IMG/VR virus record: IMGVR_UViG_3300047445_000186
Span: 124,001 to 188,000 of that record
Reading direction: 5' to 3' (one strand)
Length of the DNA: 64,000 bases
Shown: in pieces, positions 16,311 through 63,327 of the stretch
Layout of the letters: each line of letters opens with the position of its first letter
How positions within the stretch are numbered: position 1 is the stretch's first letter
The notes under the pieces: generated by a model
Databases searched by the model: none
Told to the model about the DNA's origin: nothing
The model's input: the letters and a program-made list of their open reading frames with translations, nothing else
Translations under genes and position numbers: made by a program

Positions 16311-16554
16311 AAATTCCGCATGTCAGAATTTTGGCTAGGCTTTGTCGTTGGTGCGGTGGCTGTCATAACACCACCGTTCCTCGTGTACGAGTGCCTTCGC
16401 AGGATCAAGCGAGCGAATCCAAACATGTGAATTAGTTAACACTTTCGCACCTTGCTCATCCCGCGTTACACAATCCACGTGTATCTTGTTGTACAATCAC
16501 CTATCAGCACAATGATGTGGTGAAATTAGTTCAACAACGAAAAAGGTTTTGTAA

Positions 16555-17412
16555 GTGAAAAAGATTCTTTTGGCAGTCGCTCTGACCCTGAGCATGGGCC
16601 TCGCATTCGCAGGCAACGGCCATGGCAATGATAAGACCCCGACGATCGGGAACAACGGCGGCGGGAACGGTGGTTGCGGTGTCGGCCAGCAGACGAATGG
16701 TTGTGGTAACACCGTCCCGCCAGTTGTGGTGCCTCCAGTTGTGGTGCCTCCAGTTGTGGTGCCTCCAGTTGTGGTGCCTCCAGTTGGCAACGGTGGTCAC
16801 AACGGCCATGGCGGCGGCGGTCACGCGCACTCCCATGTTCCGCAGCCGCCGATTCTGATCCCTGGTCAGACCGGGCCGCAAGGCATCCCTGGTGTCGGTA
16901 CTCCGGGTGACACAGGAGCGACTGGAGCGACGGGCGCCACTGGTGCGCAAGGCGCCCCTGGTGTCGGCCTCGCTGGTGACACTGGTGCGACCGGAGCCAC
17001 TGGTGCAACGGGTGCTGCTGGTGTCGGCACTCCGGGTGCGGCCGGCGCCGAAGGCAAGGCTGGTGCGAATGCTCCGGATGCAGTCACTGCACAGCAACTC
17101 GACAGCTCGATCGTTGCATCGCAGAAGGTGAACCAAGCGCAGATCAACAGCTTGCGTGAACAGGTCGAGTCGAACGCGAAGGCCGCTTACGCTGGTACCG
17201 CCGCTGCTCTCGCGCTCCAAATGCCTGCTCTGAATCCGAACAAGCCCGATGCCACGACCGTTCGCCTTGGTGTTGGCTCGTACAAGGGTCAGTCCGCCGT
17301 TGGTATCAGCTTCCGTCGCGGCAACAAGGACGGTGACTGGTCGGTCTCGGGCGGTGTGTCTACCACGTCGCAAGGTACTGGCGTTGCAGTCGGAGTCGAG
17401 CACTCGTTCTGA
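16555..17412 (+). CDS. YadA-like trimeric autotransporter adhesin with collagen-like and (PPVVV)n stalk
   Basis: Signal peptide, Gly-X-Y repeats, AYAGTAAALA...GVGSYKGQSAVGIS...C-terminal F anchor. Confidence 0.88.
   Translation: MKKILLAVALTLSMGLAFAGNGHGNDKTPTIGNNGGGNGGCGVGQQTNGCGNTVPPVVVPPVVVPPVVVPPVVVPPVGNGGHNGHGGGGHAHSHVPQPPILIPGQTGPQGIPGVGTPGDTGATGATGATGAQGAPGVGLAGDTGATGATGATGAAGVGTPGAAGAEGKAGANAPDAVTAQQLDSSIVASQKVNQAQINSLREQVESNAKAAYAGTAAALALQMPALNPNKPDATTVRLGVGSYKGQSAVGISFRRGNKDGDWSVSGGVSTTSQGTGVAVGVEHSF
16720..16785 (+). repeat. Perfect 15-bp tandem repeat CCAGTTGTGGTGCCT x4.4
   Basis: Read directly; encodes PVVVP repeats. Confidence 0.95.
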
Positions 17413-17432
17413 TCTGACCTGATCGCTCCCTG

Positions 17433-17458
17433 AAGGCCTGCCTCGTGCAGGCCTTTTT
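17433..17458 (+). terminator. Rho-independent terminator
   Basis: AAGGCCTGC-CTCGT-GCAGGCCTT + TTT. Confidence 0.8.
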
Positions 17459-17512
17459 AGTTTGTCCCATTCGTGGGACGAGGGGGCGTTCAGTTCCGAG
17501 TACAATACGGAT

Positions 17513-17944
17513 ATGGGCATGATTAAGATTTACGCGGGCAAATCAAAGCCCGCAAAGAAGAAACCAGGCTGGAAAGAAGCGGAAGCTGAACACCAGGCCT
17601 GGTTGAAGAGCGTGAACTCGATGTCGAGCGGTTTCCTGAGTGGTATCCAGTCGAAGGGCCGCGGACTTCGTGGAAAGAAGATCGATCCGGTCGTTGTACC
17701 GGTCGCGAATGCACGTGGGGCTGCTCCAGTCGGACGGTCCCTGGCGACACCAGGAGGGTCTACAGGCACACGGTACGTCGCGCCTGAGGTGCTATACAAG
17801 GAAAGTCCGGAGATGCTCCAGCGTGAACTGGCAGCACGAGAACGAAAGTTCAATGCAGCTCCAGCTTACAACAAGGGCGGTGACGTCCTGATGACAGACG
17901 ACATGATGGCCGACATGATGGCAGGAAAGTTACGACGCAGATGA
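17513..17944 (+). CDS. Conserved basic phage protein
   Basis: C-terminal APAYNKGG motif; TACAAT-N6-ATG. Confidence 0.65.
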   Translation: MGMIKIYAGKSKPAKKKPGWKEAEAEHQAWLKSVNSMSSGFLSGIQSKGRGLRGKKIDPVVVPVANARGAAPVGRSLATPGGSTGTRYVAPEVLYKESPEMLQRELAARERKFNAAPAYNKGGDVLMTDDMMADMMAGKLRRR

Positions 17945-29264: not shown

Positions 29265-29300
29265 GGGTTATTTAGCCTAGCCGCGCCCCGTAAATATCAG

Positions 29301-34221: not shown

Positions 34222-35250
34222 ATGGAACCGAAACTTCTGACACGCGATGCCTTCCGAGAAGGTGTGTTCGCACGGGACAAGCACAAGTGCGTGTTCTGCA
34301 GCGAGCCTGCTCAGGACGCGCATCACATTCTCGAGCGCCGTCTTTGGCCTGATGGCGGGTACTACCTCGAGAACGGCGCGTCTGTTTGCGGTGAGCACCA
34401 CATTCTGTGCGAGCAGACTGTCATTTCGGTCGAGCAAGTTCGCGATGCATGTGGCATTCGCCAACCGCACGTTCCTCCGCATTTCTACCCAGATCACCAG
34501 TACGACAAGTGGGGCAACCCTCTGCTCGATGGTGGCAAGCGCGGTCGTGGTGAACTGTTCTTCGACGAGTCAGTCCAGAAGGTCCTTGGCCAAGGTGGCG
34601 TGCTCGATCTGTTCACGTTGTACGCGAAGTACGGACGGACGTTCCATCTGCCATGGTCTCCTGGCATTCACGACGATGACAAGGCGCTGAAGGACTGCAC
34701 ACAGTTCGAAGGTAAGCGCGTGATCATGTCGCTGAAAGCCGATGGTGAGAACACCACTGGGTACTCGGACGGGCACATTCATGCTCGCTCGATTGACAGC
34801 CGAGGCGGTGAAGATCGCGCTTGGGTGAAGCAATTCCTGTCTGAGAACGTGTGCTACAACTTGCCTGAAGGCTGGCGAATCTGCGGTGAAAATCTGTGGG
34901 CCGAGCACTCGATCAAGTACAGCGACTTGAAATCGTACTTCTACGGCTTCAGCCTGTGGAATGAACGGAACGTCTGCCTCTCGTGGGACGAGACGATCGA
35001 GTATTTCGCTCTGTTAAACGTCACTCCAGTCGACGTGCTCTATGACGGTATCTGGGACGAGGCTGCGATCAGGAAAATCGAGAAGACGCTTGATCTTGAG
35101 AAGGTTGAAGGGTACGTGATCCGACTCGCTGAAGCGTACCCGTACAGCCAATTCAAGAGCTCGATCGCGAAGTTCGTCCGACCCGGGCACGTACAGACAT
35201 CTAAGCATTGGCGGGCAGGTAGCCGCTTCACACCGAACAAACTAGCATGA
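34222..35250 (+). CDS. HNH-like domain fused to ATP-dependent RNA ligase
   Basis: N-term CVFC..DAHH..C..HH; C-term KADGEN (motif I), ICGEN, EGYVIR, AKFVR. Confidence 0.85.
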   Translation: MEPKLLTRDAFREGVFARDKHKCVFCSEPAQDAHHILERRLWPDGGYYLENGASVCGEHHILCEQTVISVEQVRDACGIRQPHVPPHFYPDHQYDKWGNPLLDGGKRGRGELFFDESVQKVLGQGGVLDLFTLYAKYGRTFHLPWSPGIHDDDKALKDCTQFEGKRVIMSLKADGENTTGYSDGHIHARSIDSRGGEDRAWVKQFLSENVCYNLPEGWRICGENLWAEHSIKYSDLKSYFYGFSLWNERNVCLSWDETIEYFALLNVTPVDVLYDGIWDEAAIRKIEKTLDLEKVEGYVIRLAEAYPYSQFKSSIAKFVRPGHVQTSKHWRAGSRFTPNKLA

Positions 35251-42100: not shown

Positions 42101-42720
42101 AAATCAAAGAACTCCTGACCCTTCGTGAGGCTCCGCAAGAGGAGTCTTTTGAAGCGTACATTGATCGCCTTCAAGCAATGGGCTTGAATCCGCTTGGTAA
42201 CGGTACGAATTCGTACGTGTTCAAGCACCCAACACTGCCAAACGTCGCTGTCAAAATCTTCCTTGACGACGATCGCGGGTACCGTGATTACCTCGAGTTC
42301 TGCATCAAGCATCCGTCGAACAAGTACTGCCCGAAGGTCTTTGAGACCGACGAGTTCTCTGAACAGCGTCGTACAAAGTACTTCACGAAGGAACTGCACG
42401 CGAACTGGAACGTCGCGCGCAGCGATAACGAGCCGTACTCGATCACCTTCCTTGAAAAATTAGATCCAATCACCAATGAGGCGATGGACTCAATGTTCGA
42501 GCGTCTTGGCAAGATCGCTGGTAAGAAGCTTGGAGCTCTCGCCAATCTCGGTGCTGATGGCTGGACAGCTATTGCAGCTGACGGCAATGATCATGATCTG
42601 CAGCAGCTTGCTCAGTACTTCGTCAGCGAGCTCAAGAACGGTCACAAGCTCGACATGGGCAATCGGAAGAACTTCTGTCTGCGCGGCGATCAATTCGTTT
42701 TCATTGATCCCTTCTTTTGA
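42097..42720 (+). CDS. Protein kinase-like protein
   Basis: LGNGTNSYVF Gly loop, VAVKIF, LD....NF, FIDP. Confidence 0.65.
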   Translation: MKIKELLTLREAPQEESFEAYIDRLQAMGLNPLGNGTNSYVFKHPTLPNVAVKIFLDDDRGYRDYLEFCIKHPSNKYCPKVFETDEFSEQRRTKYFTKELHANWNVARSDNEPYSITFLEKLDPITNEAMDSMFERLGKIAGKKLGALANLGADGWTAIAADGNDHDLQQLAQYFVSELKNGHKLDMGNRKNFCLRGDQFVFIDPFF

Positions 42721-42755
42721 TCGTGCCTGAGGATGTTCTGCTCTATAATGAGGGC

Positions 42756-43181
42756 ATGAAATTCTCACATGTTAAACAAGCCGATACGCCCTGGAAGTCT
42801 GATGGACTCCGGGGCTTTTTCGAATATCGCGATCTCGGCATCAAGGACGCGACCGATGGTCAGGTCATTTGCCATCTGGTCCGCGCCGCGAAGCCAGCAG
42901 ACGAAGGCACGGGCTGGCACATCCACGTTCTGAACTTCCAGATCGTGATCATGAACAAGGGCTGGGCGAAGTTCATGTACGGCGATCAATCAGTTCTCGT
43001 CGAAGCTGGCGACGTCGTTCATCAGCAGCCAGGCCTGATCCACTACCTGTACGACTACTCACGCGACATGGAGTACACCGAGATCTGTTCTCCTGCCGAT
43101 TTCGGATCGCTTGAGGTACATGGTCACAACGTCCCAGTCCCGAAAGCATACGGCGTCTTGATCGTACCTGAGGTAGAATAA
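42756..43181 (+). CDS. Cupin domain protein
   Basis: FFEYRDLGI..TGWHIH..AGDVVHQQPGLIH. Confidence 0.85.
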   Translation: MKFSHVKQADTPWKSDGLRGFFEYRDLGIKDATDGQVICHLVRAAKPADEGTGWHIHVLNFQIVIMNKGWAKFMYGDQSVLVEAGDVVHQQPGLIHYLYDYSRDMEYTEICSPADFGSLEVHGHNVPVPKAYGVLIVPEVE

Positions 43182-43371
43182 GACCTTCACGCGAACAAAC
43201 CTTGAAGTTTCGAGCAAGTTCGCTAAATACAAATGTCCTGAAGTGATGTCGCAGAACATCGATCGTGATCCCGAAAGTGATTACACAAAGATCGAGAACA
43301 TGTTACATTACTTCTATCGACTCTAACGAGTCACCAAACTAATTCATTCAGAAACACTTCGGTAGCACAAC

Positions 43372-43506
43372 ATGAACACCGCACGCATGATCAATACGAA
43401 TCGATTCTGGCAGCAACGCCAGACGTTCGATCGTGCATGCGAGATGAAGCATGAGATTGATACCAAAGGAACGCCCCAGGTAGGAGGCTCGACGGAAACG
43501 CTCTAA
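43372..43506 (+). CDS. Putative leader peptide (44 aa) of the tRNA array
   Basis: MNTARMINTNRFWQQRQTFDRACEMKHEIDTKGTPQVGGSTETL*; codons match array anticodons. Confidence 0.7.
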   Translation: MNTARMINTNRFWQQRQTFDRACEMKHEIDTKGTPQVGGSTETL

Positions 43507-43566
43507 GCGAACCGAAAAGCAAACCAAACCTGGGGAACTACGAAAGTGGTTCCCCAGGGTCGTTTC
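43474..43566 (+). promoter_or_regulatory. Putative attenuator: antiterminator (CCCCAGGT/ACCTGGGG) competing with terminator hairpin 43529-43558
   Basis: CCTGGGGAACTAC-GAAA-GTGGTTCCCCAGG; its 5' arm is also complementary to 43474-43481. Confidence 0.7.
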
Positions 43567-43579
43567 TGGAACACCTTAA

Positions 43580-43796
43580 CGATCGTGACGATCGAGACCC
43601 TCGGTTTAAGAGACACCGAGCTACCAAAACTCCGGACCGCGATAACTCTGGCGAGTAGTCTTCAGCCAGACGAGTGCGAAAAAGGCAAATTGGTTTTATG
43701 CCTCTCGATTCGAGAGGCGTTATTTCAAAACGTGCAGATAGGATTCCGAGGAAAGCTGAAGGCCAGGATTCGGAGGAAGCAGTACGTTTTGAAATA
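43580..43796 (+). ncRNA. Multi-hairpin structured RNA preceding first tRNA
   Basis: CTCGGT/ACCGAG, CTGGC/GCCAG, GCCTCTCG/CGAGAGGC and TATTTCAAAACGTGC/GTACGTTTTGAAATA stems. Confidence 0.45.
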
Positions 43797-43798
43797 AC

Positions 43799-43874
43799 GG
43801 GTCGTTGACAGAGCGGCAGATGTACCTCCCTCTTAAGGAGATCTAGCAGGGTTCGACTCCCTGGCGACCCACCA
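43799..43874 (+). tRNA. tRNA-Lys(CTT)
   Basis: Cloverleaf, loop CTCTTAA, CCA end. Confidence 0.85.
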
Positions 43875-43879
43875 AACAT

Positions 43880-43990
43880 GCCGAGATAGCACGATGGTCG
43901 TGCACTTTATGTAAGAGCGAGTGTCTACGGGAAACACGGCACTTGACAGAAAAGAAACGGATGGTGGTTCAAATCCATCTCTTGGCGCCA
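43880..43990 (+). ncRNA. tRNA-like RNA with extended anticodon arm and no anticodon loop
   Basis: Acceptor GCCGAGA/TCTTGGC-GCCA, D arm, TTCAAAT T-loop; ~50-nt irregular hairpin in place of anticodon arm. Confidence 0.7.
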
Positions 43991-43996
43991 AACAAT

Positions 43997-44072
43997 GGGA
44001 CTTTCGTATAGCTGGTGCGTACGGGAGCTTGAAAACCTTCAGGAAGCGGTTCGATTCCGCTAGGTCCCACCA
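43997..44072 (+). tRNA. tRNA-Phe(GAA)
   Basis: Loop TTGAAAA, CCA. Confidence 0.85.
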
Positions 44073-44076
44073 ATTT

Positions 44077-44151
44077 GCTTCGTTCGACTACCGGTTAGGT
44101 CGCTAGCCTTTCAAGCTGGAGAAACGGGTTCGACTCCCGTACGAAGCACCA
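44077..44151 (+). tRNA. tRNA-Glu(TTC)
   Basis: Loop CTTTCAA, CCA. Confidence 0.9.
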
Positions 44152-44158
44152 GAACAAT

Positions 44159-44237
44159 AGGGTTGAAATCGAAGTGGCACGAGATACATGGCTTTGACCC
44201 ATGGTAATATCAGGTTCGAGTCCTGACAGCCCTGCCA
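44159..44237 (+). tRNA. tRNA-Gln(TTG)
   Basis: CATGG-CTTTGAC-CCATG, CCA. Confidence 0.88.
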
Positions 44238-44242
44238 AACAT

Positions 44243-44320
44243 ATCAGCGTCGTCTAAATGGTCTAGGACATCAGACTTTCAATCTGAGCAATGCGGGTTC
44301 AACTCCCGTCGCTGATGCCA
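44243..44320 (+). tRNA. tRNA-Glu(TTC)
   Basis: TCAGA-CTTTCAA-TCTGA, CCA. Confidence 0.9.
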
Positions 44321-44326
44321 AACAAT

Positions 44327-44401
44327 ACCTTAGTAGCTCAGTGGTAGAGCACCGTCTTGATAAGGCGTAGGTCGTTGGTTCGATTCCAACTTAAGGTACC
44401 A
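44327..44401 (+). tRNA. tRNA-Ile(GAT)
   Basis: Loop TTGATAA, CCA. Confidence 0.88.
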
Positions 44402-44408
44402 GAATAAT

Positions 44409-44482
44409 GGGACGTTCGTATATGGGTATTATGTGGCGCTGTCTACGCTACGAAACGGGTTCGAGTCCCGTACGTCCCGCCA
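44409..44482 (+). tRNA. tRNA-Asp(GTC)
   Basis: TGGCG-CTGTCTA-CGCTA, CCA. Confidence 0.88.
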
Positions 44483-44486
44483 AATT

Positions 44487-44561
44487 CGTGCGGTAGCATT
44501 ATGGTAATGCGCCACCCTCATAAGGTGTCCCAAGTGGGTTCGATTCCCACCTGCACGACCA
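44487..44561 (+). tRNA. tRNA-Met(CAT), elongator-type or Ile2
   Basis: Loop CTCATAA; C1-G72 paired so not initiator-like; CCA. Confidence 0.8.
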
Positions 44562-44573
44562 AGTGTCCTTTGC

Positions 44574-44645
44574 TCCGGTGTAGCTCAGCGGTAGAGCAGC
44601 TCGCTGTTAACGAGTTGGTCGTTGGTTCGATCCCAGCCTCCGGAG
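44574..44645 (+). tRNA. tRNA-Asn(GTT), no encoded CCA
   Basis: Loop CTGTTAA; ends G-CAA. Confidence 0.85.
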
Positions 44646-44661
44646 CAAAGAACATTTCTAT

Positions 44662-44756
44662 TCCCCTGTACTCTAATTGGTAAGAGACCTGGCTGTTAAC
44701 CAGACGTAAAGGCCGTAAGGCGTAATATGCAAGTTCGAAGCTTGCTGGGGGAGCCA
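44662..44756 (+). tRNA. tRNA-Asn(GTT) with long variable arm
   Basis: Loop CTGTTAA; ~25-nt variable region with GCC-GTAA-GGC hairpin; CCA. Confidence 0.78.
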
Positions 44757-44806
44757 AGATTAAGAAACCTTACTCACGCGGTCACTCGCGGTCCCGTAGG
44801 GTTTAT

Positions 44807-44882
44807 GCGCGGTTAGCTCAGTTGGTAGAGCAAACGACCGATAATCGTTAGGTCGCTGGTTCGAATCCAGCACTGCGCACCA
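44807..44882 (+). tRNA. tRNA-Ile(GAT), C at position 33
   Basis: AACGA-CCGATAA-TCGTT, CCA. Confidence 0.88.
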
Positions 44883-44890
44883 CAAATTAT

Positions 44891-44967
44891 GCCTCTTTAG
44901 CTCAACTGGATAGAGCACTGGCCTACGAAGCCGGGGGTTGCAGGTTCGAATCCTGTGAGAGGCACCA
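44891..44967 (+). tRNA. tRNA-Arg(ACG)
   Basis: Loop CTACGAA, CCA. Confidence 0.92.
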
Positions 44968-44973
44968 GAATAT

Positions 44974-45034
44974 TCCGACCGTCAGTGCAAGGTTATCCTT
45001 CTACGATTCCCCCTTGCGCGATCTCTTTGTCGGA
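44974..45034 (+). ncRNA. Y-RNA-like ncRNA inside tRNA array
   Basis: TCCGAC/GTCGGA stem, CCG-N9-GGTTATC, GTGCAAGG/CCTTGCGC stem, 3' ATCTCTTTGT shared with 54929-54985. Confidence 0.7.
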
Positions 45035-45042
45035 CGAAACAT

Positions 45043-45116
45043 AGGTCCTTGGTGTAATGGCAGCATGACGGTCTCCAAAACCGTTCGTGGGGGTTCGAGT
45101 CCCTCAGGACCTGCCA
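45043..45116 (+). tRNA. tRNA-Trp(CCA)
   Basis: ACGGT-CTCCAAA-ACCGT, CCA. Confidence 0.92.
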
Positions 45117-45185
45117 AGATAACGGTGCGTTTAGGAACGGACGCTTAATTGCCAACCCCACATAATCTGGCGGCCGAATAACAAT

Positions 45186-45260
45186 GTGCACTTGACAGAA
45201 TGGTAATGTCGCTGGCTGCAACCCAGTTGTTCGGGGGTTCGATTCCCTCAGTGCACTCCA
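45186..45260 (+). tRNA. tRNA-Cys(GCA)
   Basis: Loop CTGCAAC, U73, CCA. Confidence 0.88.
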
Positions 45261-45416
45261 ATTACGACAGGAGCAAGGCGCCCTCGGGCTTGTGGCTAGC
45301 TGTGGAAAGTGACCCTCCACCTCCAACGTCGTTCCAATCAAAGCTTCGTCGTTCCATTCACACGGGTACGCGACTCCGTTTCTCGCAAGAGGTGCAGGGC
45401 GAAGCAACGCAATTAT

Positions 45417-45489
45417 AGGTGAGCCAGCGGCGCTGGACAAGAGCATCCAAAGCTCGAAGTTGGTAGTTCGACTCTGCCATCGCCTGCCA
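45417..45489 (+). tRNA. Atypical tRNA-Trp(CCA), minimal D arm
   Basis: D arm CCAGC-GGC-GCTGG; loop ATCCAAA; TTCGACT; CCA. Confidence 0.7.
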
Positions 45490-45494
45490 ATTAT

Positions 45495-45566
45495 AGGTGA
45501 TCCATGGGCCGTGGACATGAGCCTCCAAAACTCGTTGGGACAGTTCGACTCTGTCATTGCCTGCCA
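45495..45566 (+). tRNA. Atypical tRNA-Trp(CCA), minimal D arm
   Basis: D arm CCATG-GGC-CGTGG; loop CTCCAAA; CCA. Confidence 0.7.
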
Positions 45567-45574
45567 AAATTTAT

Positions 45575-45650
45575 GGTGTACGTAGTGTAGTGGTCTGCAC
45601 CCTAGGCTGTGAACCTGGTAGTGGGAGTTCGATCCTCCTCGTACACCCCA
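45575..45650 (+). tRNA. tRNA-His(GTG)
   Basis: G-1/C73, loop CTGTGAA, CCA. Confidence 0.9.
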
Positions 45651-45658
45651 GAATATGT

Positions 45659-45731
45659 TGCCTCGTGATATGGAAATCGCCCCTGGCTCTGACCCAGGTG
45701 GATGACGGTTCGATTCCGTCCGGGGTTGCCA
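45659..45731 (+). tRNA. tRNA-Gln(CTG), short D arm
   Basis: CCTGG-CTCTGAC-CCAGG, CCA. Confidence 0.8.
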
Positions 45732-45736
45732 AATAC

Positions 45737-45812
45737 GCCTTGTGAGTGAATGTGGAGAGCACAGCGGTTTCGTATTCCGCAGGACGCAGTTCGACTCTGC
45801 GACAAGGCACCA
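45737..45812 (+). tRNA. tRNA-Thr(CGT)
   Basis: GCGGT-TTCGTAT-TCCGC; GCC acceptor start, A73, CCA. Confidence 0.78.
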
Positions 45813-45819
45813 GAATTAT

Positions 45820-45892
45820 TGGGGTATGACATGGACGTTGGCCTGGGCTTTGACCCCGGTGCCGGTCGGTTCGATTCCGACTACCCTTGCCA
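45820..45892 (+). tRNA. tRNA-Gln(TTG), short D arm
   Basis: CTGGG-CTTTGAC-CCCGG, CCA. Confidence 0.78.
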
Positions 45893-45895
45893 AAC

Positions 45896-45973
45896 ACCGC
45901 ATTAGCTCAACTGGATCAGAGCGTCGCACTCCGAAGGCGACAGATGTGGGTTCGAATCCCATGTGTGGTACCA
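45896..45973 (+). tRNA. tRNA-Arg(CCG)
   Basis: Loop CTCCGAA, CCA. Confidence 0.85.
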
Positions 45974-45980
45974 AAATTAC

Positions 45981-46056
45981 GCCGTCATAGCTCAGTTGGT
46001 AGAGCAGTTCCTTGGTATGGAGAAGGTCAGGGGTTCGATTCCTCTTGACGGCACCA
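45981..46056 (+). tRNA. tRNA-Thr(GGT)
   Basis: Loop TTGGTAT, CCA. Confidence 0.9.
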
Positions 46057-46248
46057 GTTTAGCACATGCTCGGCATGATAACACAGGGTCATTGATCCGG
46101 ACATGTTCGATCTGCGGTCTGACGTAGGAGTACGGCAAAGACAAGCTCGGAACGGGAACTCCCATGTGCTGATTCATTACTTGAAAGGAGCGCGTAATGC
46201 GTACGTCAGTTTCGACGCCTAGCGCGTCTGGTAAACGCCATACACTTT

Positions 46249-46324
46249 GGGTGTATGGCGTAAAGGTTAGCGCATCGGGCTTTTAACCCGTAAGGTCAGA
46301 GTTCGACTCTCTGTGCACCCACCA
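46249..46324 (+). tRNA. tRNA-Lys(TTT)
   Basis: CGGG-CTTTTAA-CCCG, CCA. Confidence 0.9.
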
Positions 46325-49610: not shown

Positions 49611-49687
49611 GCCTCTGTAGCACAACTGGATAGTGCAGCCCTCTTCTAAAGGGTCCGTTGTAGGTTCAAATCCTATCAGAGGTACCA
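49611..49687 (+). tRNA. tRNA-Arg(TCT), orphan
   Basis: GCCCT-CTTCTAA-AGGGT, CCA. Confidence 0.9.
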
Positions 49688-50232: not shown

Positions 50233-50418
50233 TCTCTGCACGCCGATCCACCCTCTCGCCCGCGGCTCATCATCGCGGGCGAGACTGTTTCTGCACGCTA
50301 TCTGTCACCTAATGCCTGTAATCTCGCGCCTCTCAGGTGTCTTTTGACATGTCTGGTCGTGCGCAGGGGGATGTCGCCGCTAAATAGACTATCATAAGAA
50401 TCATCCAGATCCAACACA

Positions 50419-55358: not shown

Positions 55359-56978
55359 ATGAACATGTACACCGACCACGCCGCTTCTCTGAACGCCGTT
55401 CAGACTTCCACCCCACAGACGGAAGCAATTCCTGGCCGCGAAGCCGAGATGAAGCTGAACAACGCTGGTGGATTCACGTTCACTCTTGATCAGTGGGGCG
55501 TCCTCGATCGCTTCATCATGATCGGTTCCGAGAACGGGAACTACTACGTCGGTCAAAAGGACGTGATGAAGCAATCGTTCGCGAACACCCTGAAGTGTAT
55601 CGCTGAAGACGGTCTGCGTGCTGTCGCTCGTGCTCTCGAGTACTCAACCTCTGGTCGCGCTCCGAAGAACGACCCTGCTCTGGTTGTGCTCGCGCTCGCC
55701 GCATCGAAGGGAACGCCTGAAGTTCAATCCGCTGCTTACGACGCCCTGCCAAAGGTCGCTCGTACCGGTACCCATCTGTTCACGTTCGTCTCGATTCTGA
55801 ACTCCCTCGGGAAGTGGAACGCCGCTGCAAAGCGCGGCCTGGCGAAGTGGTACACGAACCGTTCGATCGACAAGCTCGCGATCCAAGTGCTGAAGTACCA
55901 GCAGCGCAATGGCTGGTCGCACCGCGACGTCCTGCGTCTGGCACACGTGAAGCCGCAGAACGACATCCAGACGAATCTGTTCAAGTACATCACGAAGGGT
56001 GGCGACGCTCTCGTGCAAGGCTCGCCGATTCCGCAGCTCGTGATCGACTTCGAATTCCTGAAGCGCGCCGAGTCGGCCAAGGATGTCGTTCGTCTGATCG
56101 AGTCGAATCCATCGATCGCATGGGAACTCGTTCCTACGCAATTCCTGAAGGATCCGGACGTGCTGATGGCGCTCCTCCCTTCGATGGGCATGACCGCTGT
56201 GATCCGTCAACTGGGTAAGCTCACTGCCGCTGGCGTGATCAAGCCGATGTCGGAAGGCGAGAAGTTGGTCGTCGCGAAGCTCTCGGATGCCGAAGCAATC
56301 AAGCGTGGCCGTGTCCATCCGATCACTATCCTCCAAGCCCTGAAGCAGTACCAAGCTGGTCATGGTGAAAAGGGTTCGTTGGTCTGGTCTCCAGTTCAAC
56401 GCGTCGTGTCGGCCCTGGATGACTCGTTCTACTCTGCGTTCACGCTTGGCGAGGACAAGAAGGAGAATCACTTCATCGCTTGCGACATCTCCGGCTCCAT
56501 GACCATGGACAGCGCGAAGGTGATCGGTTCGCCGAACCTCTTGGCTGGTGAAGTGGCTGCGGTGTTCGCGATGGCGATCGCTCGTACCCAATCGAACTAT
56601 TTCCTCGCTGGTTTCAAGCAGAACTTGGAACCACTGAAGATCTCGCCGACGATGCGTCTCGCTGACGCGTTGAACGCAATGCGTGCTATGCACTGGCAAG
56701 GCGGCTCGACCGACTGTGCTAAGGCATTCGAGTACGCGCTCCAGAACGGTATCGCGGTGGACAAGTTCACCGTGATTACCGACAATGAAACGTACGCGGG
56801 TGGCCAAGCCCCAGTGCAGGCGCTCAAGAAGTATCGTGACCGTACTGGTCGCGCTGCGAAGTCGATCGTGATTGCTACCTCGGTATCTGAATTCACGATC
56901 GCCGATCCGAAGGACGGTGGTATGTTGGACATCGCAGGGTTTGACTCGGCTGCTCCACAGATCATCGCTGATTTCTAA
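55359..56978 (+). CDS. rsr: Ro60/TROVE-domain RNA-binding protein with C-terminal vWA
   Basis: NNAGGF..LDRF..GSE.G.YY; KYQQRNGWSHRDVLRLAH; DISGSM; ITDNET; GFD. Confidence 0.95.
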   Translation: MNMYTDHAASLNAVQTSTPQTEAIPGREAEMKLNNAGGFTFTLDQWGVLDRFIMIGSENGNYYVGQKDVMKQSFANTLKCIAEDGLRAVARALEYSTSGRAPKNDPALVVLALAASKGTPEVQSAAYDALPKVARTGTHLFTFVSILNSLGKWNAAAKRGLAKWYTNRSIDKLAIQVLKYQQRNGWSHRDVLRLAHVKPQNDIQTNLFKYITKGGDALVQGSPIPQLVIDFEFLKRAESAKDVVRLIESNPSIAWELVPTQFLKDPDVLMALLPSMGMTAVIRQLGKLTAAGVIKPMSEGEKLVVAKLSDAEAIKRGRVHPITILQALKQYQAGHGEKGSLVWSPVQRVVSALDDSFYSAFTLGEDKKENHFIACDISGSMTMDSAKVIGSPNLLAGEVAAVFAMAIARTQSNYFLAGFKQNLEPLKISPTMRLADALNAMRAMHWQGGSTDCAKAFEYALQNGIAVDKFTVITDNETYAGGQAPVQALKKYRDRTGRAAKSIVIATSVSEFTIADPKDGGMLDIAGFDSAAPQIIADF

Positions 56979-61368: not shown

Positions 61369-63327
61369 ATGTCAGCTCTCAAGTCTCTCTCGGCGAAATA
61401 CGCAGAGAAATTCGCAGCACCGGAAGTCATGTCGCTCGAAGCGTACCTGGACCTGTGCAAAACCGAACCTCTGGCATATGCCACCGCCGCAGAGCGGATG
61501 GTCGCAGCCATTGGCCAACCTGTTGTGGTTGACACGTCGGAAGACCCACGTCTCTCGCGCATCCACAGCAACAAGAAGATCCGCACGTACGATGCATTCA
61601 AGGAATACTACGGCGGTGAAGATCAGATCGAACGTCTCGTTGCGTACTTCCGCAATGCAGCCGCAGGTCTGGAAGAATCGAAGCAGATTCTGTACCTGAA
61701 GGGTCCAGTCGGCGGCGGGAAGTCCAGCCTGGTCGAGCTCCTGAAGGCTCTGATGGAAAAGCACCCGTTCTACGCTCTGTACGATGCGAGCGAAAAGGAT
61801 GCGGAACTGCGGACCTCGCCAGTGTTCGAATCGCCGCTCGGTCTGTTCAACAAGCACGACCCCGATCACCAAGCGGTTCTCGCTGACTCGGGCATCCCAG
61901 TGGGCTACGCTGGTCAAGCAGTTCTGTCGGGCTGGGCACTGAAGAAGCTCGAAGAATTCGGCGGCGACATCACGCGTTTCAGCGTCGTGAAGCTCTGGCC
62001 GAACAAGGACACGCAAGTCGGCGTGATGAAGGTCGAGCCGGGCGACGAGAACAACCAAGACGTCTCTGTGCTGGTCGGCAAGACTGATCTGCGGAAGCTC
62101 GAGAAGTTCAGCCAGAATCACCCGTACGCTTACACATACGGTGGTGGTCTGAATCGCACGAACCAAGGCCTGATGGACTTCGCCGAAATGTTCAAGGCGA
62201 ACATCAAGACGCTGAACCCGTTGCTGATGGCTACGCAAGAGCACAACTACAACGGTACCGAAGCGATCCCAGCGATGCCTTACACCGGCATTATCTGCGC
62301 GCACAGCAACGAGTCCGAGTGGTTCGCGTTCAAGAACAACAAGACGAACGAAGCGTTCCTTGACCGTGTGTACATCGTGGACGTGCCGTACTGCCTCCGC
62401 GTCGACGAAGAAGTGAAGATCTATCAGAAGCTGATCGCGGGCTCCTCGCTCTCGAAGGCACCGATGGCTCCGTACACTCTCGAGCTGCTCGCTCAGTGGA
62501 TGGTTCTGACTCGCCTGAAGGAGCCAGAGAACTCGACGCTGATGGCGAAGATGAAGGTCTATAACGGCGAGAACGTGAAGGACACGATGCCGAACGCAAA
62601 GCCGTACGAAGAGTACCGCGATGCTGCCGGGAACGACGAAGGTATGAGCGGCCAAAGCACTCGATTCGCGTTCAAGATCCTGTCGCAATCGTTCGATCTG
62701 CGCCCTGAAGAACAACAGGCAAACCCTGTGGATCTGATGTACGTGATCGACGCCGCGGTCAAGAAGGAATCGCTGCCGGAAGAAACCGAGAAGAAGCTCC
62801 TGACGCTGATCAAGGATCTGCAACGGAAGTACTTCGATTTCCTCGAAAAGGAACTGCGCGCTGCCTACCTCGACTCGTTCAACAGCTTCGGCCAGAACAT
62901 GTTCGATCGGTACTTCCTGTTCGCTGAAGCCTGGATTGCTGATGAGCAATGCCGCGATCCGGAAACTCATCAGATGATGAACCGCGAGAAGCTGAACGCA
63001 GCTCTCGAAGAGACCGAAAAGCCGGCTGGGATCGTGAATGCCAAGGACTTCCGGAACGAGATCGTGAACTACGTGCTGCGGTACAAGAACAAGCACGACG
63101 TCGCTCCTCGCTGGAACGAGTACGAGAAGATCAAGGTCGTGCTCGAGAAGCGGATGTTCAGCGCAACCGAGAACATCATGCCAGTCGTGTCGTTCGGTCC
63201 GAAGGGTGACAAGGAAGCTGAAGAGAAGCACACGAAGTTCGTCGAGCGCATGATCGAGAACGGGTACAGCGAAAACCAAGTGAAGATCCTGGTGTCCTGG
63301 TGGTCGCAAAACAAGAAAGCTGCATAA
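61369..63327 (+). CDS. prkA: PrkA/YeaG family serine kinase (AAA+)
   Basis: AAERM..AIG; GPVGGGKSS; EPGDENNQD; EMFKA; AHSNESEW. Confidence 0.95.
   Translation: MSALKSLSAKYAEKFAAPEVMSLEAYLDLCKTEPLAYATAAERMVAAIGQPVVVDTSEDPRLSRIHSNKKIRTYDAFKEYYGGEDQIERLVAYFRNAAAGLEESKQILYLKGPVGGGKSSLVELLKALMEKHPFYALYDASEKDAELRTSPVFESPLGLFNKHDPDHQAVLADSGIPVGYAGQAVLSGWALKKLEEFGGDITRFSVVKLWPNKDTQVGVMKVEPGDENNQDVSVLVGKTDLRKLEKFSQNHPYAYTYGGGLNRTNQGLMDFAEMFKANIKTLNPLLMATQEHNYNGTEAIPAMPYTGIICAHSNESEWFAFKNNKTNEAFLDRVYIVDVPYCLRVDEEVKIYQKLIAGSSLSKAPMAPYTLELLAQWMVLTRLKEPENSTLMAKMKVYNGENVKDTMPNAKPYEEYRDAAGNDEGMSGQSTRFAFKILSQSFDLRPEEQQANPVDLMYVIDAAVKKESLPEETEKKLLTLIKDLQRKYFDFLEKELRAAYLDSFNSFGQNMFDRYFLFAEAWIADEQCRDPETHQMMNREKLNAALEETEKPAGIVNAKDFRNEIVNYVLRYKNKHDVAPRWNEYEKIKVVLEKRMFSATENIMPVVSFGPKGDKEAEEKHTKFVERMIENGYSENQVKILVSWWSQNKKAA

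Follow-up and report, generated by a model that had tools for sequence, protein, structure and literature searches.

We asked whether a short open reading frame (ORF) and a hairpin that lie upstream of a tRNA array in an uncultured giant phage form a switch through which the supply of the encoded tRNAs could control their own transcription. The sequence analysed (the window) is a stretch of 64,000 nucleotides that is part of a 332-kb jumbo-phage contig. The original prediction proposed that the ORF is a leader peptide written in the codons of the tRNAs encoded downstream, and that a ribosome stalled on it would free an antiterminator. We confirmed the underlying observation and found that comparative data support this interpretation, although function is inferred from anatomy and covariation.

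The leader and the tRNA array

To describe the locus, we first examined the region for ORFs, hairpins, tRNA genes and Rfam matches. The features, all on the + strand, are as follows.

43202-43229 (+), candidate promoter: TTGAAG, 16-nt spacer, TAAATA, within the recurrent motif GCTAAATA
43314-43334 (+), conserved upstream block containing a small hairpin (GACTC / GAGTC)
43372-43506 (+), leader ORF of 44 codons plus TAA
43375-43473 (+), sensor part of the leader, codons 2-34, upstream of region 2
43407-43424 (+), conserved hairpin inside the ORF (TCTGGC / GCCAGA), at the apex of a long hairpin spanning 43361-43464, possibly a pause hairpin
43474-43481 (+), region 2, the 5' strand of the antiterminator (CCCCAGGT), codons 35-37
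43474-43535 (+), antiterminator hairpin, closed by region 2 pairing with region 3, with the stop codon (43504-43506) at its apex
43529-43568 (+), intrinsic-terminator-like hairpin (13 bp, GAAA loop) plus the tail GTCGTTTCTG
43601-43621 (+), conserved small hairpin (CTCGGT / ACCGAG) in the read-through leader
43635-43685 (+), conserved 50-nt RNA motif: invariant GACCGC, a covarying 5-bp stem, a conserved 12-nt loop, and GAGTGCGA.AAAGG
43700-43797 (+), second terminator-like hairpin (43700-43718, tail GTTATTTC) and a long A/U-rich stem (43720-43733 with 43784-43797) that ends one base before the first tRNA
43799-46324 (+), tRNA array of 19 confident genes and up to 4 atypical ones, serving K F E Q I D M N R W C H T

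The ORF starts with ATG and translates as originally described. The hairpin at 43529-43558 has 13 bp, one of them G-U, is the only match to itself in the window, and passes a scan for terminator-like structures. The sequence CCCCAGGT at 43474-43481 is the exact complement of ACCTGGGG at 43528-43535. ARAGORN at default settings found 19 tRNAs in 43799-46324, plus Arg(TCT) at 49611. Rfam added a sub-threshold tRNA at 44160-44232, whose anticodon loop was read by hand as Gln(TTG), and sensitive ARAGORN settings added Gln(TTG) at 45820-45892, Trp(CCA) at 45495-45566 and an odd tRNA-like element at 43880-43990. The 23 tRNAs of the original prediction are therefore the generous count, while the set of 13 amino acids holds for the confident calls.

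To test whether the composition of the leader is unusual, we counted the codons that specify amino acids served by the array. Of the first 32 codons, 30 fall in that set, and all 13 amino acids are present. The nominal binomial p is 1.06e-6 at the window's proteome frequency of 0.54, which reproduces the chance estimate of about 1e-6 given originally, but it weakens to about 1e-5 with local base composition and to 9e-5 to 4e-4 with a local dinucleotide model. The original estimate is too optimistic for the window alone, and the real support comes from comparison between phages. Empirically, the ORF ranks first of 731 ORFs of at least 30 aa in the window. It holds the only one of 41,313 32-residue windows in the window's ORFs (six frames) that reaches 30, and none of the 78,943 such windows in the background loci reaches even 29. 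The codon-level claims that Thr is written only as ACC/ACG and that only Arg(CCG) is not sampled are correct, but on their own add little statistical weight.

The recurrent motif GCTAAATA occurs 8 times in the window, 7 on the + strand, each upstream of a gene start. The same or a similar motif (GTATAAATA, GCATAAATA) precedes the leader in relatives (lineages are given L numbers here), and L074 and L078 have consensus TTGACA-17-TATAAT there. No such motif lies between the terminator and the first tRNA. The 21-mer at 43314-43334 is unique in the window and identical in L005 apart from the loop.

Alternative pairing across phage lineages

We then recovered the same layout upstream of the tRNA arrays of 14 further phage lineages, 13 from IMG/VR and assembly look-ups and 1 from a MAG contig, which are related to the window only at 48-75% identity of the RNA ligase. 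In each the order is a promoter-like motif, an ORF of 39-46 codons, antiterminator, terminator, the conserved 50-nt RNA motif, and then tRNAs. All carriers are uncultured, and no GenBank phage has the module. The stop codon always lies between region 2 and the terminator. Indels of the window's leader ORF against L005 are multiples of 3. Purine-rich SD-like motifs precede the start codon in 13 of the 14 lineages analysed (window included). The window's own copy is the least canonical: it has no clear SD, its start codon is paired in the predicted long hairpin, and its U-tract is interrupted (GTCGTTTC), whereas relatives have canonical tails such as TGTTTTTGG. Other gene-end hairpins of this phage, for example at 50254-50284, have similar imperfect tails.

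To explore whether the terminator and antiterminator are conserved as alternatives, we compared the three strands involved. Region 2 is an 8-11 nt perfect complement (7 nt in L081) of the base of the terminator 5' arm, at codons 32-41 of each ORF. The core sequence differs between groups (CCCCAGG, CCCTGGTT, CCCTCAGT, GCCCTTTG and others), and region 2, the terminator 5' arm and the 3' arm change together. Shuffle p per lineage is 0.0007-0.2, and Fisher's combination over 6 sequence types gives 2.4e-6, without using the fact that the match always falls at the same place. On the MAFFT alignment, the terminator base is 82% paired with 12 double-change cells and the antiterminator is 78% paired with 8 double-change cells; for both, 0 of 500 shuffles reach the covariation score. 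Compensatory changes in the terminator hairpin were also read directly from the sequences of the window and L005.

Folding predictions agree with these pairings. In the window, the MFE of the transcript truncated before the terminator 3' arm is -27.0 kcal/mol and keeps all 8 pairs, while the terminator is at -26.5 kcal/mol. The antiterminator is not an isolated 8-bp helix but closes a roughly 70-nt hairpin that is about as stable as the terminator. In all 14 lineages analysed (window included), the MFE of the transcript cut at the end of the terminator 5' arm contains every region 2:3 pair, with antiterminators at -20 to -37 kcal/mol and terminators at -11 to -31 kcal/mol. The distance from the end of region 2 to the stop codon is 5-22 nt, and from the stop to region 3 is 19-33 nt. 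A ribosome at the end of the ORF therefore sits on or against region 2.

It is possible, though unlikely, that the region is an untranslated, structured 5' leader or a non-coding RNA of the tRNA precursor serving processing, stability or protein binding, with the hairpin as a 3'-end or processing element and the ORF incidental. The leader RNA is indeed much more structured than shuffles, with predicted folds giving z = -5.8 in the window and -5.9 in L005, and a 21-nt stretch inside the ORF is invariant between the two, synonymous sites included. The hairpin inside the ORF is kept in relatives as CUGGC/GCCAG or CUGGCA/UGCCAG, and with a compensatory change as UUGGC/GCCAA in L041 and L038; its role as a pause hairpin is an inference. 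Downstream of the terminator, the hairpin at 43601-43621 has a different stem in L005 (ACCGCG / CGCGGT) but keeps its pairing, and the 50-nt motif, retrieved by pattern scans, is present upstream of the array in 15 aligned lineages with 6 pairs showing compensatory changes. The second terminator-like hairpin and the A/U-rich stem are also kept in L005 and other relatives with different sequences, and may serve processing or a second checkpoint. Large structured RNAs such as GOLLD and ROOL appear next to phage tRNA genes, and are likewise conserved structured RNA adjacent to tRNA arrays in phages. However, there is no Rfam match to the leader, including GOLLD, ROOL and T-box, or to the 50-nt motif, and the element is a chain of simple hairpins with a translated-looking ORF and a terminator switch. 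Moreover, an open frame of 39-46 codons with a start codon is kept in 15 lineages (window included) and always ends between region 2 and region 3, and an amino-acid content that follows the array can only matter if the frame is read.

Leader codons and array content

To investigate whether leaders in related phages track their tRNA sets, we compared the codons upstream of region 2 with each phage's own array. The share of these sensor codons whose amino acid is served by the array is 27/33 to 31/31 (82-100%), against a proteome share of 0.52-0.71, with per-lineage p of 1e-7 to 2e-3. In the window it is 30 of 33, against 0.55 in the proteome (p=7.5e-6). The window's sensor codons sample 15 of 17 distinct anticodons, or 16 of 17 if Gln(TTG) is counted. 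In five lineages the sensor codons sample 18/18, 18/18, 18/18, 15/15 and 21/23, and coverage is above the null mean in all 11 lineages tested.

Where arrays differ, leaders differ too. The L079 array has Ser, Leu, Gly, Pro and Tyr tRNAs but no Lys, Asn, Thr or Ile, and its leader is rich in the former and has no Lys or Asn. The L079 leader scores 0.91 on its own array and 0.49-0.69 on the others, while other leaders score 0.48-0.65 on the L079 array. L044 gained Leu and Pro codons together with Leu and Pro tRNAs, and L093 has a 19-amino-acid array and a leader with all 20 amino acids in 40 codons (p=0.009). Permutation of arrays among leaders gave p=2.3e-4 at amino-acid level, 1.5e-5 at codon level, and 8e-5 for Jaccard similarity of the sets; with one representative per array type, the true assignment ranks 2nd of 720. 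The lineages are related, so truly independent contrasts number about 4-6. Some arrays are cut by locus ends, and tRNAs elsewhere in these genomes were not seen. The match also has exceptions: the L087 leader has Phe, Trp and Ser, but no such tRNA lies within 8.8 kb; L053 has 2 Val and 2 Ala without tRNAs; the window has 2 Ala and 1 Gly; L081 has Cys without a tRNA; and the L041 and L046 arrays encode Ala(CGC), which their leaders do not sample.

Alternatively, the ORF could encode a functional small protein followed by an ordinary terminator, with the alternative pairing and the codon match as side effects. Gene callers called the ORF as a gene in 7 contigs, and within subgroups the peptide is about as conserved as other proteins, with 52% identity between the window and L005 and differences by codon position of 13, 13 and 22. 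On the other hand, several lineages share almost no peptide sequence with the window, and the peptides of L079 and L093 have essentially no similarity to the window's while the RNA architecture is kept. No homologue exists among 5.8 billion proteins, and no Pfam domain matches. Conserved codons change synonymously less often than in real genes of the same pair (0.32 against 0.47-0.52), which points to RNA-level constraint. A protein function predicts neither the three-way covariation of region 2 with both terminator arms nor a composition that follows each phage's tRNA set, and we consider this reading very unlikely.

A proposed attenuator of phage tRNA supply

Taken together, the results are best explained by a ribosome-mediated (leader-peptide) transcription attenuator placed in front of a phage tRNA array, a reading to which we assign a probability of about 0.65. 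We propose that transcription starts at a sigma-70-like promoter near 43225 and that a ribosome translates the 44-codon leader while RNA polymerase moves on. If the ribosome runs quickly to the end of the ORF, it covers or melts region 2 and the 5' half of the antiterminator, the 13-bp hairpin at 43529-43558 forms, and transcription stops before the tRNA genes. If the ribosome is delayed anywhere in codons 2-34, region 2 pairs with 43528-43535, the antiterminator blocks the terminator stem, and polymerase reads through into the array. Translation of the ORF, termination at the hairpin, coupling of the two, and the physiological cue are all inferred. The model does not explain the second terminator-like hairpin (43700-43726) and the conserved motif that lie between the switch and the tRNAs.

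The proposed switch can be compared with leader-peptide attenuators of amino-acid operons (trp, his, leu, thr, pheA), and especially with the multivalent ilvGMEDA leader (Leu, Val, Ile). As in these, a short ORF in the 5' leader and an intrinsic terminator precede the regulated genes, an antiterminator shares one strand with the terminator while its other strand is occluded by a ribosome that finishes the ORF, and the regulatory codons are cognate to what the operon supplies. Here, however, the regulated genes are tRNAs and not enzymes, the carrier is a phage, no Rfam leader family matches, and no region-1 partner that sequesters region 2 was found. The leader samples 13-20 amino acids and 15-23 anticodons, mostly once to five times each, as dispersed singles and not as the tandem runs of one to three amino acids that give classical attenuators their sensitivity. 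In addition, without any translation the antiterminator should form by default, and the switch would then be off only when translation is efficient, which is unlike trp. The pheST attenuator also applies leader-peptide attenuation to a component of the translation apparatus, giving feedback on charged-tRNA supply, but it senses a single amino acid and controls a protein-coding operon in a bacterial chromosome. T-box riboswitches use a terminator/antiterminator decision that reports tRNA status and controls translation-related genes, but a T-box binds one uncharged tRNA directly through a specifier codon and needs no ribosome, and the leader here, which contains a conserved ORF, gives no T-box match to the Rfam models at E up to 10.

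Because the architecture would respond to any slowing of translation, because codons occur singly, and because the switch is inferred to read through by default when nothing is translated, it could sense general translation capacity (ribosome availability, global shut-off) and not particular tRNAs, with the codon match arising because the leader must be decodable by phage-supplied tRNAs alone. This appears improbable, since it does not explain why nearly every anticodon is sampled, and those phage proteomes plainly rely on host tRNAs for 30-50% of their codons.

The same attenuator could instead exist mainly to detect host anticodon nucleases or other tRNA-destroying defences, turning on replacement tRNAs only under attack, as the original prediction proposed. 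The core arrays serve the split codon boxes plus Thr and Arg, many of which are probably targets of known anticodon nucleases, and phage tRNAs are known to rescue infection from tRNA-cleaving defences (PMC10264068, PMC11555353, PMC11464382). A single missing tRNA would stall the ribosome for a long time at one codon, which suits a leader made of single codons, and an RNA ligase gene is syntenic with the array across the clade. Nevertheless, nothing in the sequences identifies a nuclease or a host, there is no evidence here for or against this trigger, and plain feedback on tRNA supply during infection explains the same anatomy equally well. The broad array and leader of L093 look more like general supply control than defence against particular nucleases. 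We regard this specific cue as doubtful.

Phage-encoded tRNAs, as in T4, T5 and others, have been regarded as codon compensation or as counter-defence to tRNA-cleaving systems, and the arrays described here are likewise large, enriched in split-box tRNAs, and have an RNA ligase gene nearby. The published work that we could search concerns what the tRNAs do, and none of it describes a leader-peptide switch that regulates their transcription. The element looks like a feedback sensor of tRNA supply of a kind not described before in that work. In the proposed model, nearly every codon in the sensor part is read by a tRNA species encoded downstream and nearly every species is sampled at least once, so that delay would report a shortage of any of those tRNAs, whether not yet made, uncharged, or destroyed, and the result would be negative feedback on the phage's own tRNA supply.

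Codon content of the leader ORF in the window

The window matches roughly positions 124,001-188,000 of a 331,776-bp IMG/VR contig and is part of a jumbo phage, of which several identical shorter contigs also exist. These copies of the window phage carry no polymorphism in the leader. The sequence features on which the original prediction of a leader-peptide attenuator was based are all present, together with a promoter-like sequence, in the following order.

43202-43229, a promoter-like sequence
43372-43506, the leader ORF
43474-81, region 2 within the ORF (CCCCAGGT), complementary to ACCTGGGG at 43528-35
43529-43558, a 13-bp hairpin with a GAAA loop and the tail GTCGTTTCTG
43799-46324, the tRNA array, in which ARAGORN found 19 tRNAs

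Rfam and sensitive ARAGORN settings added Gln(TTG) and a few atypical tRNA-like elements to the array, while the amino-acid set of the confident genes is the predicted set of 13 (K F E Q I D M N R W C H T). The gaps in the array (43880-43990, 44160-44237, 44662-44756, 45390-45566, 45820-45892 and 46119-46231) hold atypical tRNA-like elements that end in an encoded CCA. One of these has a 33-nt insertion in the anticodon region, another is a 95-nt tRNA-Asn, and others are weak second copies of Gln(TTG) and Trp(CCA). The promoter-like sequence contains the 8-mer GCTAAATA, which occurs 8 times in the window against about 2 expected, at 2382, 19902, 31329, 43222, 50379, 53797 and 54893 on the + strand and at 29276 on the - strand. 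Every copy lies just upstream of a gene start and several follow a terminator-like hairpin, and the 8-mer is a candidate phage or host promoter -10 element.

To test whether the codon bias is more than chance in this window alone, we compared the leader with several null models. Thirty of the first 32 codons belong to the 13-amino-acid set, which gave p = 1.06e-6 at the window proteome frequency (0.54), about 1e-5 with local base composition, and 9e-5 to 4e-4 with a local dinucleotide model. Empirically, the ORF is the most extreme of 731 ORFs in the window and holds the only 32-residue window, out of 41,313 in the six-frame ORFs, that reaches 30, while none of the 78,943 windows in the background loci reaches 29. 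However, after allowing for the choice of prefix and of ORF, p is about 1e-3, which is suggestive but not conclusive in a scan that looks for anything odd. Base composition was rejected as the cause of the bias, as it raises the expected share only to 0.58-0.68 and the other frames of the same DNA are unbiased. The words GATC (633 against about 250 expected) and CGATCG (78 against about 16 expected) are strongly over-represented across the window and form part of a long hairpin in the leader, and we rejected the idea that they are operators.

Related lineages and the predicted RNA switch

To find relatives of the leader, we searched with several parts of the locus. A search of 5.8 billion proteins with the leader peptide returned only the peptide itself, and a DNA search of GenBank phages with 43100-43900 found no match. 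Homologues of the cupin-fold gene just upstream of the leader (42717-43181) lie inside tRNA islands of megaphages or in loci without tRNAs, and none has the leader. In the loci L003, L009-L011 and L030 (loci and phage lineages are numbered with the prefix L), these homologues are 73-75% identical and are embedded in islands of 40 or more tRNA genes in megaphage contigs of up to 524 kb, where a tRNA follows the cupin gene directly. Exact-pattern scans with the first tRNA, the hairpin, the upstream block and the ORF core found only the window phage and one diverged relative, L005, while the 207-aa neighbour gene found only the window phage. L005 shares RNA ligase at 69% and another protein at 48% identity, and its leader peptide is not on record. 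In L005 the ORF is kept at 43 codons with indels in multiples of three, the hairpin is kept with one compensatory pair and two compatible single changes, and CCCCAGG is kept too.

The rest of the family was retrieved by a search with the syntenic RNA ligase, followed by pattern scans with a conserved 50-nt motif that lies between the hairpin and the first tRNA. Together, these searches gave a clade of jumbo-phage contigs of about 100-370 kb, each of which has a tRNA array a few kb downstream of the ligase. Each array is preceded by the same layout, which was seen in 14 lineages other than the window: a promoter-like motif (GCTAAATA or GTATAAATA, with the consensus TTGACA-17-TATAAT in lineages L074 and L078), an ORF of 39-46 codons, about 20-35 nt of spacer, a strong hairpin with a T-rich tail, the conserved 50-nt motif, further hairpins, and the tRNAs. 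The ligase (PF09414) is one of three notable genes near the array in the window (34222-35250; 55359-56978; 61369-63327), together with a Ro60/TROVE RNA-binding protein about 39% identical to those of actinobacteriophages and a PrkA-type kinase, which together suggest an RNA repair or quality-control theme. No Y RNA was found, as the only YrlA hit is a chance match across two tRNAs. Ralstonia phage RsoM2USA, the closest cultured relative by ligase, has no tRNAs within 14 kb downstream. Elsewhere in the window, a 329-aa ORF on the - strand (16531-17520) contains a tandem five-residue repeat (NWRHH) repeated several times, and may be a spurious antisense frame of the + strand ORF at 16555-17412.

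We then examined whether the hairpin and region 2 could form mutually exclusive structures. Every lineage has a G+C-rich hairpin of 9-16 bp followed by a T-rich tail between the ORF and the tRNAs, as is typical of an intrinsic terminator, although termination itself is inferred. The tail in the window is imperfect, and other gene-end hairpins of the window phage have similarly long stems and imperfect U tails, while relatives have canonical tails. In every lineage, a segment inside the ORF, 5-22 nt before the stop codon (region 2), is the perfect complement of the base of the terminator 5' arm, with a length of 8-11 nt, or 7 nt in L081. The core differs between groups of lineages, and the three strands change together.

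Core sequence in each group of lineages
Window, L005, L053: CCCCAGG
L056, L049, L082, L041: CCCTGGTT(CT)
L046, L077, L087: CCCTCAGT
L044: CCCTTAGT
L079: GCCCTTTG
L093: AGGGTTCTTTG

Shuffling of the ORF tail gave p of 0.0007-0.2 per lineage and 2.4e-6 combined over six sequence types, without using the fact that the match always falls at the same place. Because several rows of the MAFFT alignment are one column out of register, column-based covariation is an underestimate and we relied on per-sequence complementarity; nevertheless, the column counts exceeded all 500 shuffles for both helices. When each transcript was folded up to the end of the terminator 5' arm, the MFE contained every pair between region 2 and that arm (region 3) in 14 of 14 lineages. 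The predicted antiterminator is a long hairpin of -20 to -37 kcal/mol with the stop codon near its apex, and the terminators are -11 to -31 kcal/mol. The antiterminator is therefore more substantial than the isolated 8-bp helix of the original prediction.

The ORF is probably translated. An open frame with a start codon is kept in lineages whose peptides are unrelated (the window, L079 and L093), and it always ends between region 2 and region 3. SD-like purine runs lie 7-14 nt upstream of the start in 13 of 14 lineages, with the window being the weakest. The RNA is also constrained directly. A hairpin inside the ORF (43407-43424) is kept, with a compensatory change in L041 and L038, and the first two-thirds of the ORF form a long hairpin (43361-43464) that does not involve region 2 in the predicted folds. 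Synonymous change at conserved codons is lower than in real genes of the same phage pair. Peptide conservation within subgroups is therefore largely explained at the RNA level.

Two further conserved elements lie between the putative terminator and the first tRNA.

43635-43685, the 50-nt RNA motif, with invariant GACCGC and GAGTGCGA.AAAGG flanks, a 5-bp stem with many compensatory changes and a conserved 12-nt loop (GAGTA.TCTT.A)
43700-43797, a second terminator-like hairpin (43700-43718, tail GTTATTTC) followed by a long A/U-rich stem (43720-33 with 43784-97) that ends one base before tRNA-Lys

The 50-nt motif is the most conserved element of the region and is also found in L041, L044, L046, L049, L056, L074, L077-L079, L081, L082, L087 and L097. 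It has no Rfam match, and a search of GenBank phages with it gave only chance hits. In L074, L078 and L093 (4894-5424), a T5orf172-domain gene with its own consensus promoter is inserted between the terminator and the motif, and the motif stays next to the array. In L044, a different ORF is inserted between the motif and the first tRNA. These are probably mobile endonuclease-type insertions, and they uncouple the leader from the array. The second hairpin and the A/U-rich stem are kept with different sequences in relatives. The motif and these structures may serve in processing, as a second checkpoint, or in protein binding.

Correspondence between leader codons and tRNA arrays

To explore whether leaders follow their arrays, we took the codons between the start and region 2 as the sensor. 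The share of sensor codons whose amino acid has a tRNA in the same phage's array is 27/33 to 31/31 (82-100%), against 0.52-0.71 in that phage's long ORFs, with per-lineage p of 1e-7 to 2e-3. Since the core arrays are homologous, the informative cases are those in which arrays differ. The L079 array serves C D E F G H L M P Q R S W Y and lacks Lys, Asn, Thr, Ile, Ala and Val, and its leader has 6 Ser, 4 Leu, 2 Gly, 2 Pro and 1 Tyr, with no Lys and no Asn. The L079 leader scores 0.91 on its own array and 0.49-0.69 on the others, while the other leaders score 0.48-0.65 on the L079 array. Upstream of the L079 leader, where we looked for a second array, we found only ordinary genes. L044 has Leu, Pro and Thr(TGT) tRNAs, and its leader uses TTA, CCT and ACA. 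In L093, 25 tRNAs serve 19 amino acids, and the leader has all 20 amino acids in 40 codons, which has p=0.009 by composition and is seen in 0 of 2,128 real 40-residue windows.

The match has exceptions. Presence of Cys in the leader agrees with presence of tRNA-Cys in 10 of 11 lineages, with a Cys codon but no such tRNA in L081. Val codons are absent from the window's leader, whose array has no tRNA-Val, and occur 2-3 times in the six leaders whose arrays encode tRNA-Val; on the other hand, L053 has two Val and two Ala codons without tRNAs. The window has two Ala and one Gly, and the L041 and L046 arrays encode Ala(CGC), which their leaders do not sample. The leader of L087 (the same phage as L050 and L051) has Phe, Trp and Ser, but no such tRNAs lie within 8.8 kb, although all related arrays have Phe and Trp tRNAs. 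Either these two tRNAs lie elsewhere in the 368-kb genome or this lineage has lost them recently. Arrays may be cut by locus ends, and tRNAs elsewhere in these genomes were not seen.

Permuting arrays among leaders gave p = 2.3e-4 at the amino-acid level, 1.5e-5 at the codon level, and 8e-5 for Jaccard similarity of the amino-acid sets. With one representative per array type, the true assignment ranked 2nd of 720. As the lineages are related, independent contrasts are few, about 4-6. Sensor codons also sample nearly every distinct anticodon, with coverage of 18/18, 18/18, 18/18, 15/15 and 21/23 in five lineages and 15/17 or 16/17 in the window, and coverage is above expectation in all 11 lineages tested.

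Proposed attenuation and its relation to known regulators

Taken together, the results are best read as classical ribosome-mediated attenuation, although translation, termination, their coupling and the physiological cue are all inferred. We propose that a ribosome that reaches the end of the ORF occupies or melts region 2, so that the terminator forms, while a ribosome delayed in the sensor part leaves region 2 free, so that the antiterminator forms and polymerase enters the array. Because the sensor is written in the array's own codons and samples almost all of its anticodons, the signal would be the supply of those tRNAs, and the circuit a negative feedback. The proposed switch differs from the textbook cases in that the regulated genes are tRNAs, the carrier is a phage, and the leader is multiplexed, with many amino acids used once to five times each as dispersed single codons rather than tandem runs. 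In addition, no region 1 that sequesters region 2 is evident in the predicted folds, so the untranslated default should be read-through.

The specific cue of the original prediction, cleavage of host tRNAs by anticodon nucleases, is compatible with the split-box bias of the arrays, the syntenic RNA ligase and published roles of phage tRNAs, but it has no direct support here. It is possible, though doubtful, that the leader is a multiplex tRNA-inventory sensor that is rewritten as the repertoire changes. In this reading, each lineage would edit its roughly 30-codon test track so that every tRNA species it carries is probed, and the switch would fire when any one of them is missing, including when a host anticodon nuclease destroys it. 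That would make it a defence-triggered, on-demand tRNA replacement circuit.

Scans of 43150-43810 and of the L005 homologue against the Rfam covariance models with permissive filters gave only chance-level hits to unrelated families, with no match to leader and riboswitch families such as the Trp, His, Leu and Thr leaders and T-box, and no hit to GOLLD or ROOL at E up to 10. No cultured phage in GenBank carries the module, and full-text literature searches found no description of an attenuator or leader peptide in front of phage tRNA arrays. Leader-peptide attenuation itself is known, while its target and its multiplex logic appear to be new here.

The proposed switch also offers a compact, reprogrammable sensor of tRNA availability for synthetic biology and a rule for finding tRNA-linked regulatory leaders in metagenomes. 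How phages regulate their tRNA genes is essentially unknown, and the debate about why phages carry tRNAs (codon compensation, replacing degraded host tRNAs, or evading anticodon nucleases) has lacked a handle on when they are expressed. A leader whose codons mirror the downstream tRNA set would be the first attenuator known to control tRNA genes, and also the first to sense many tRNA species at once.
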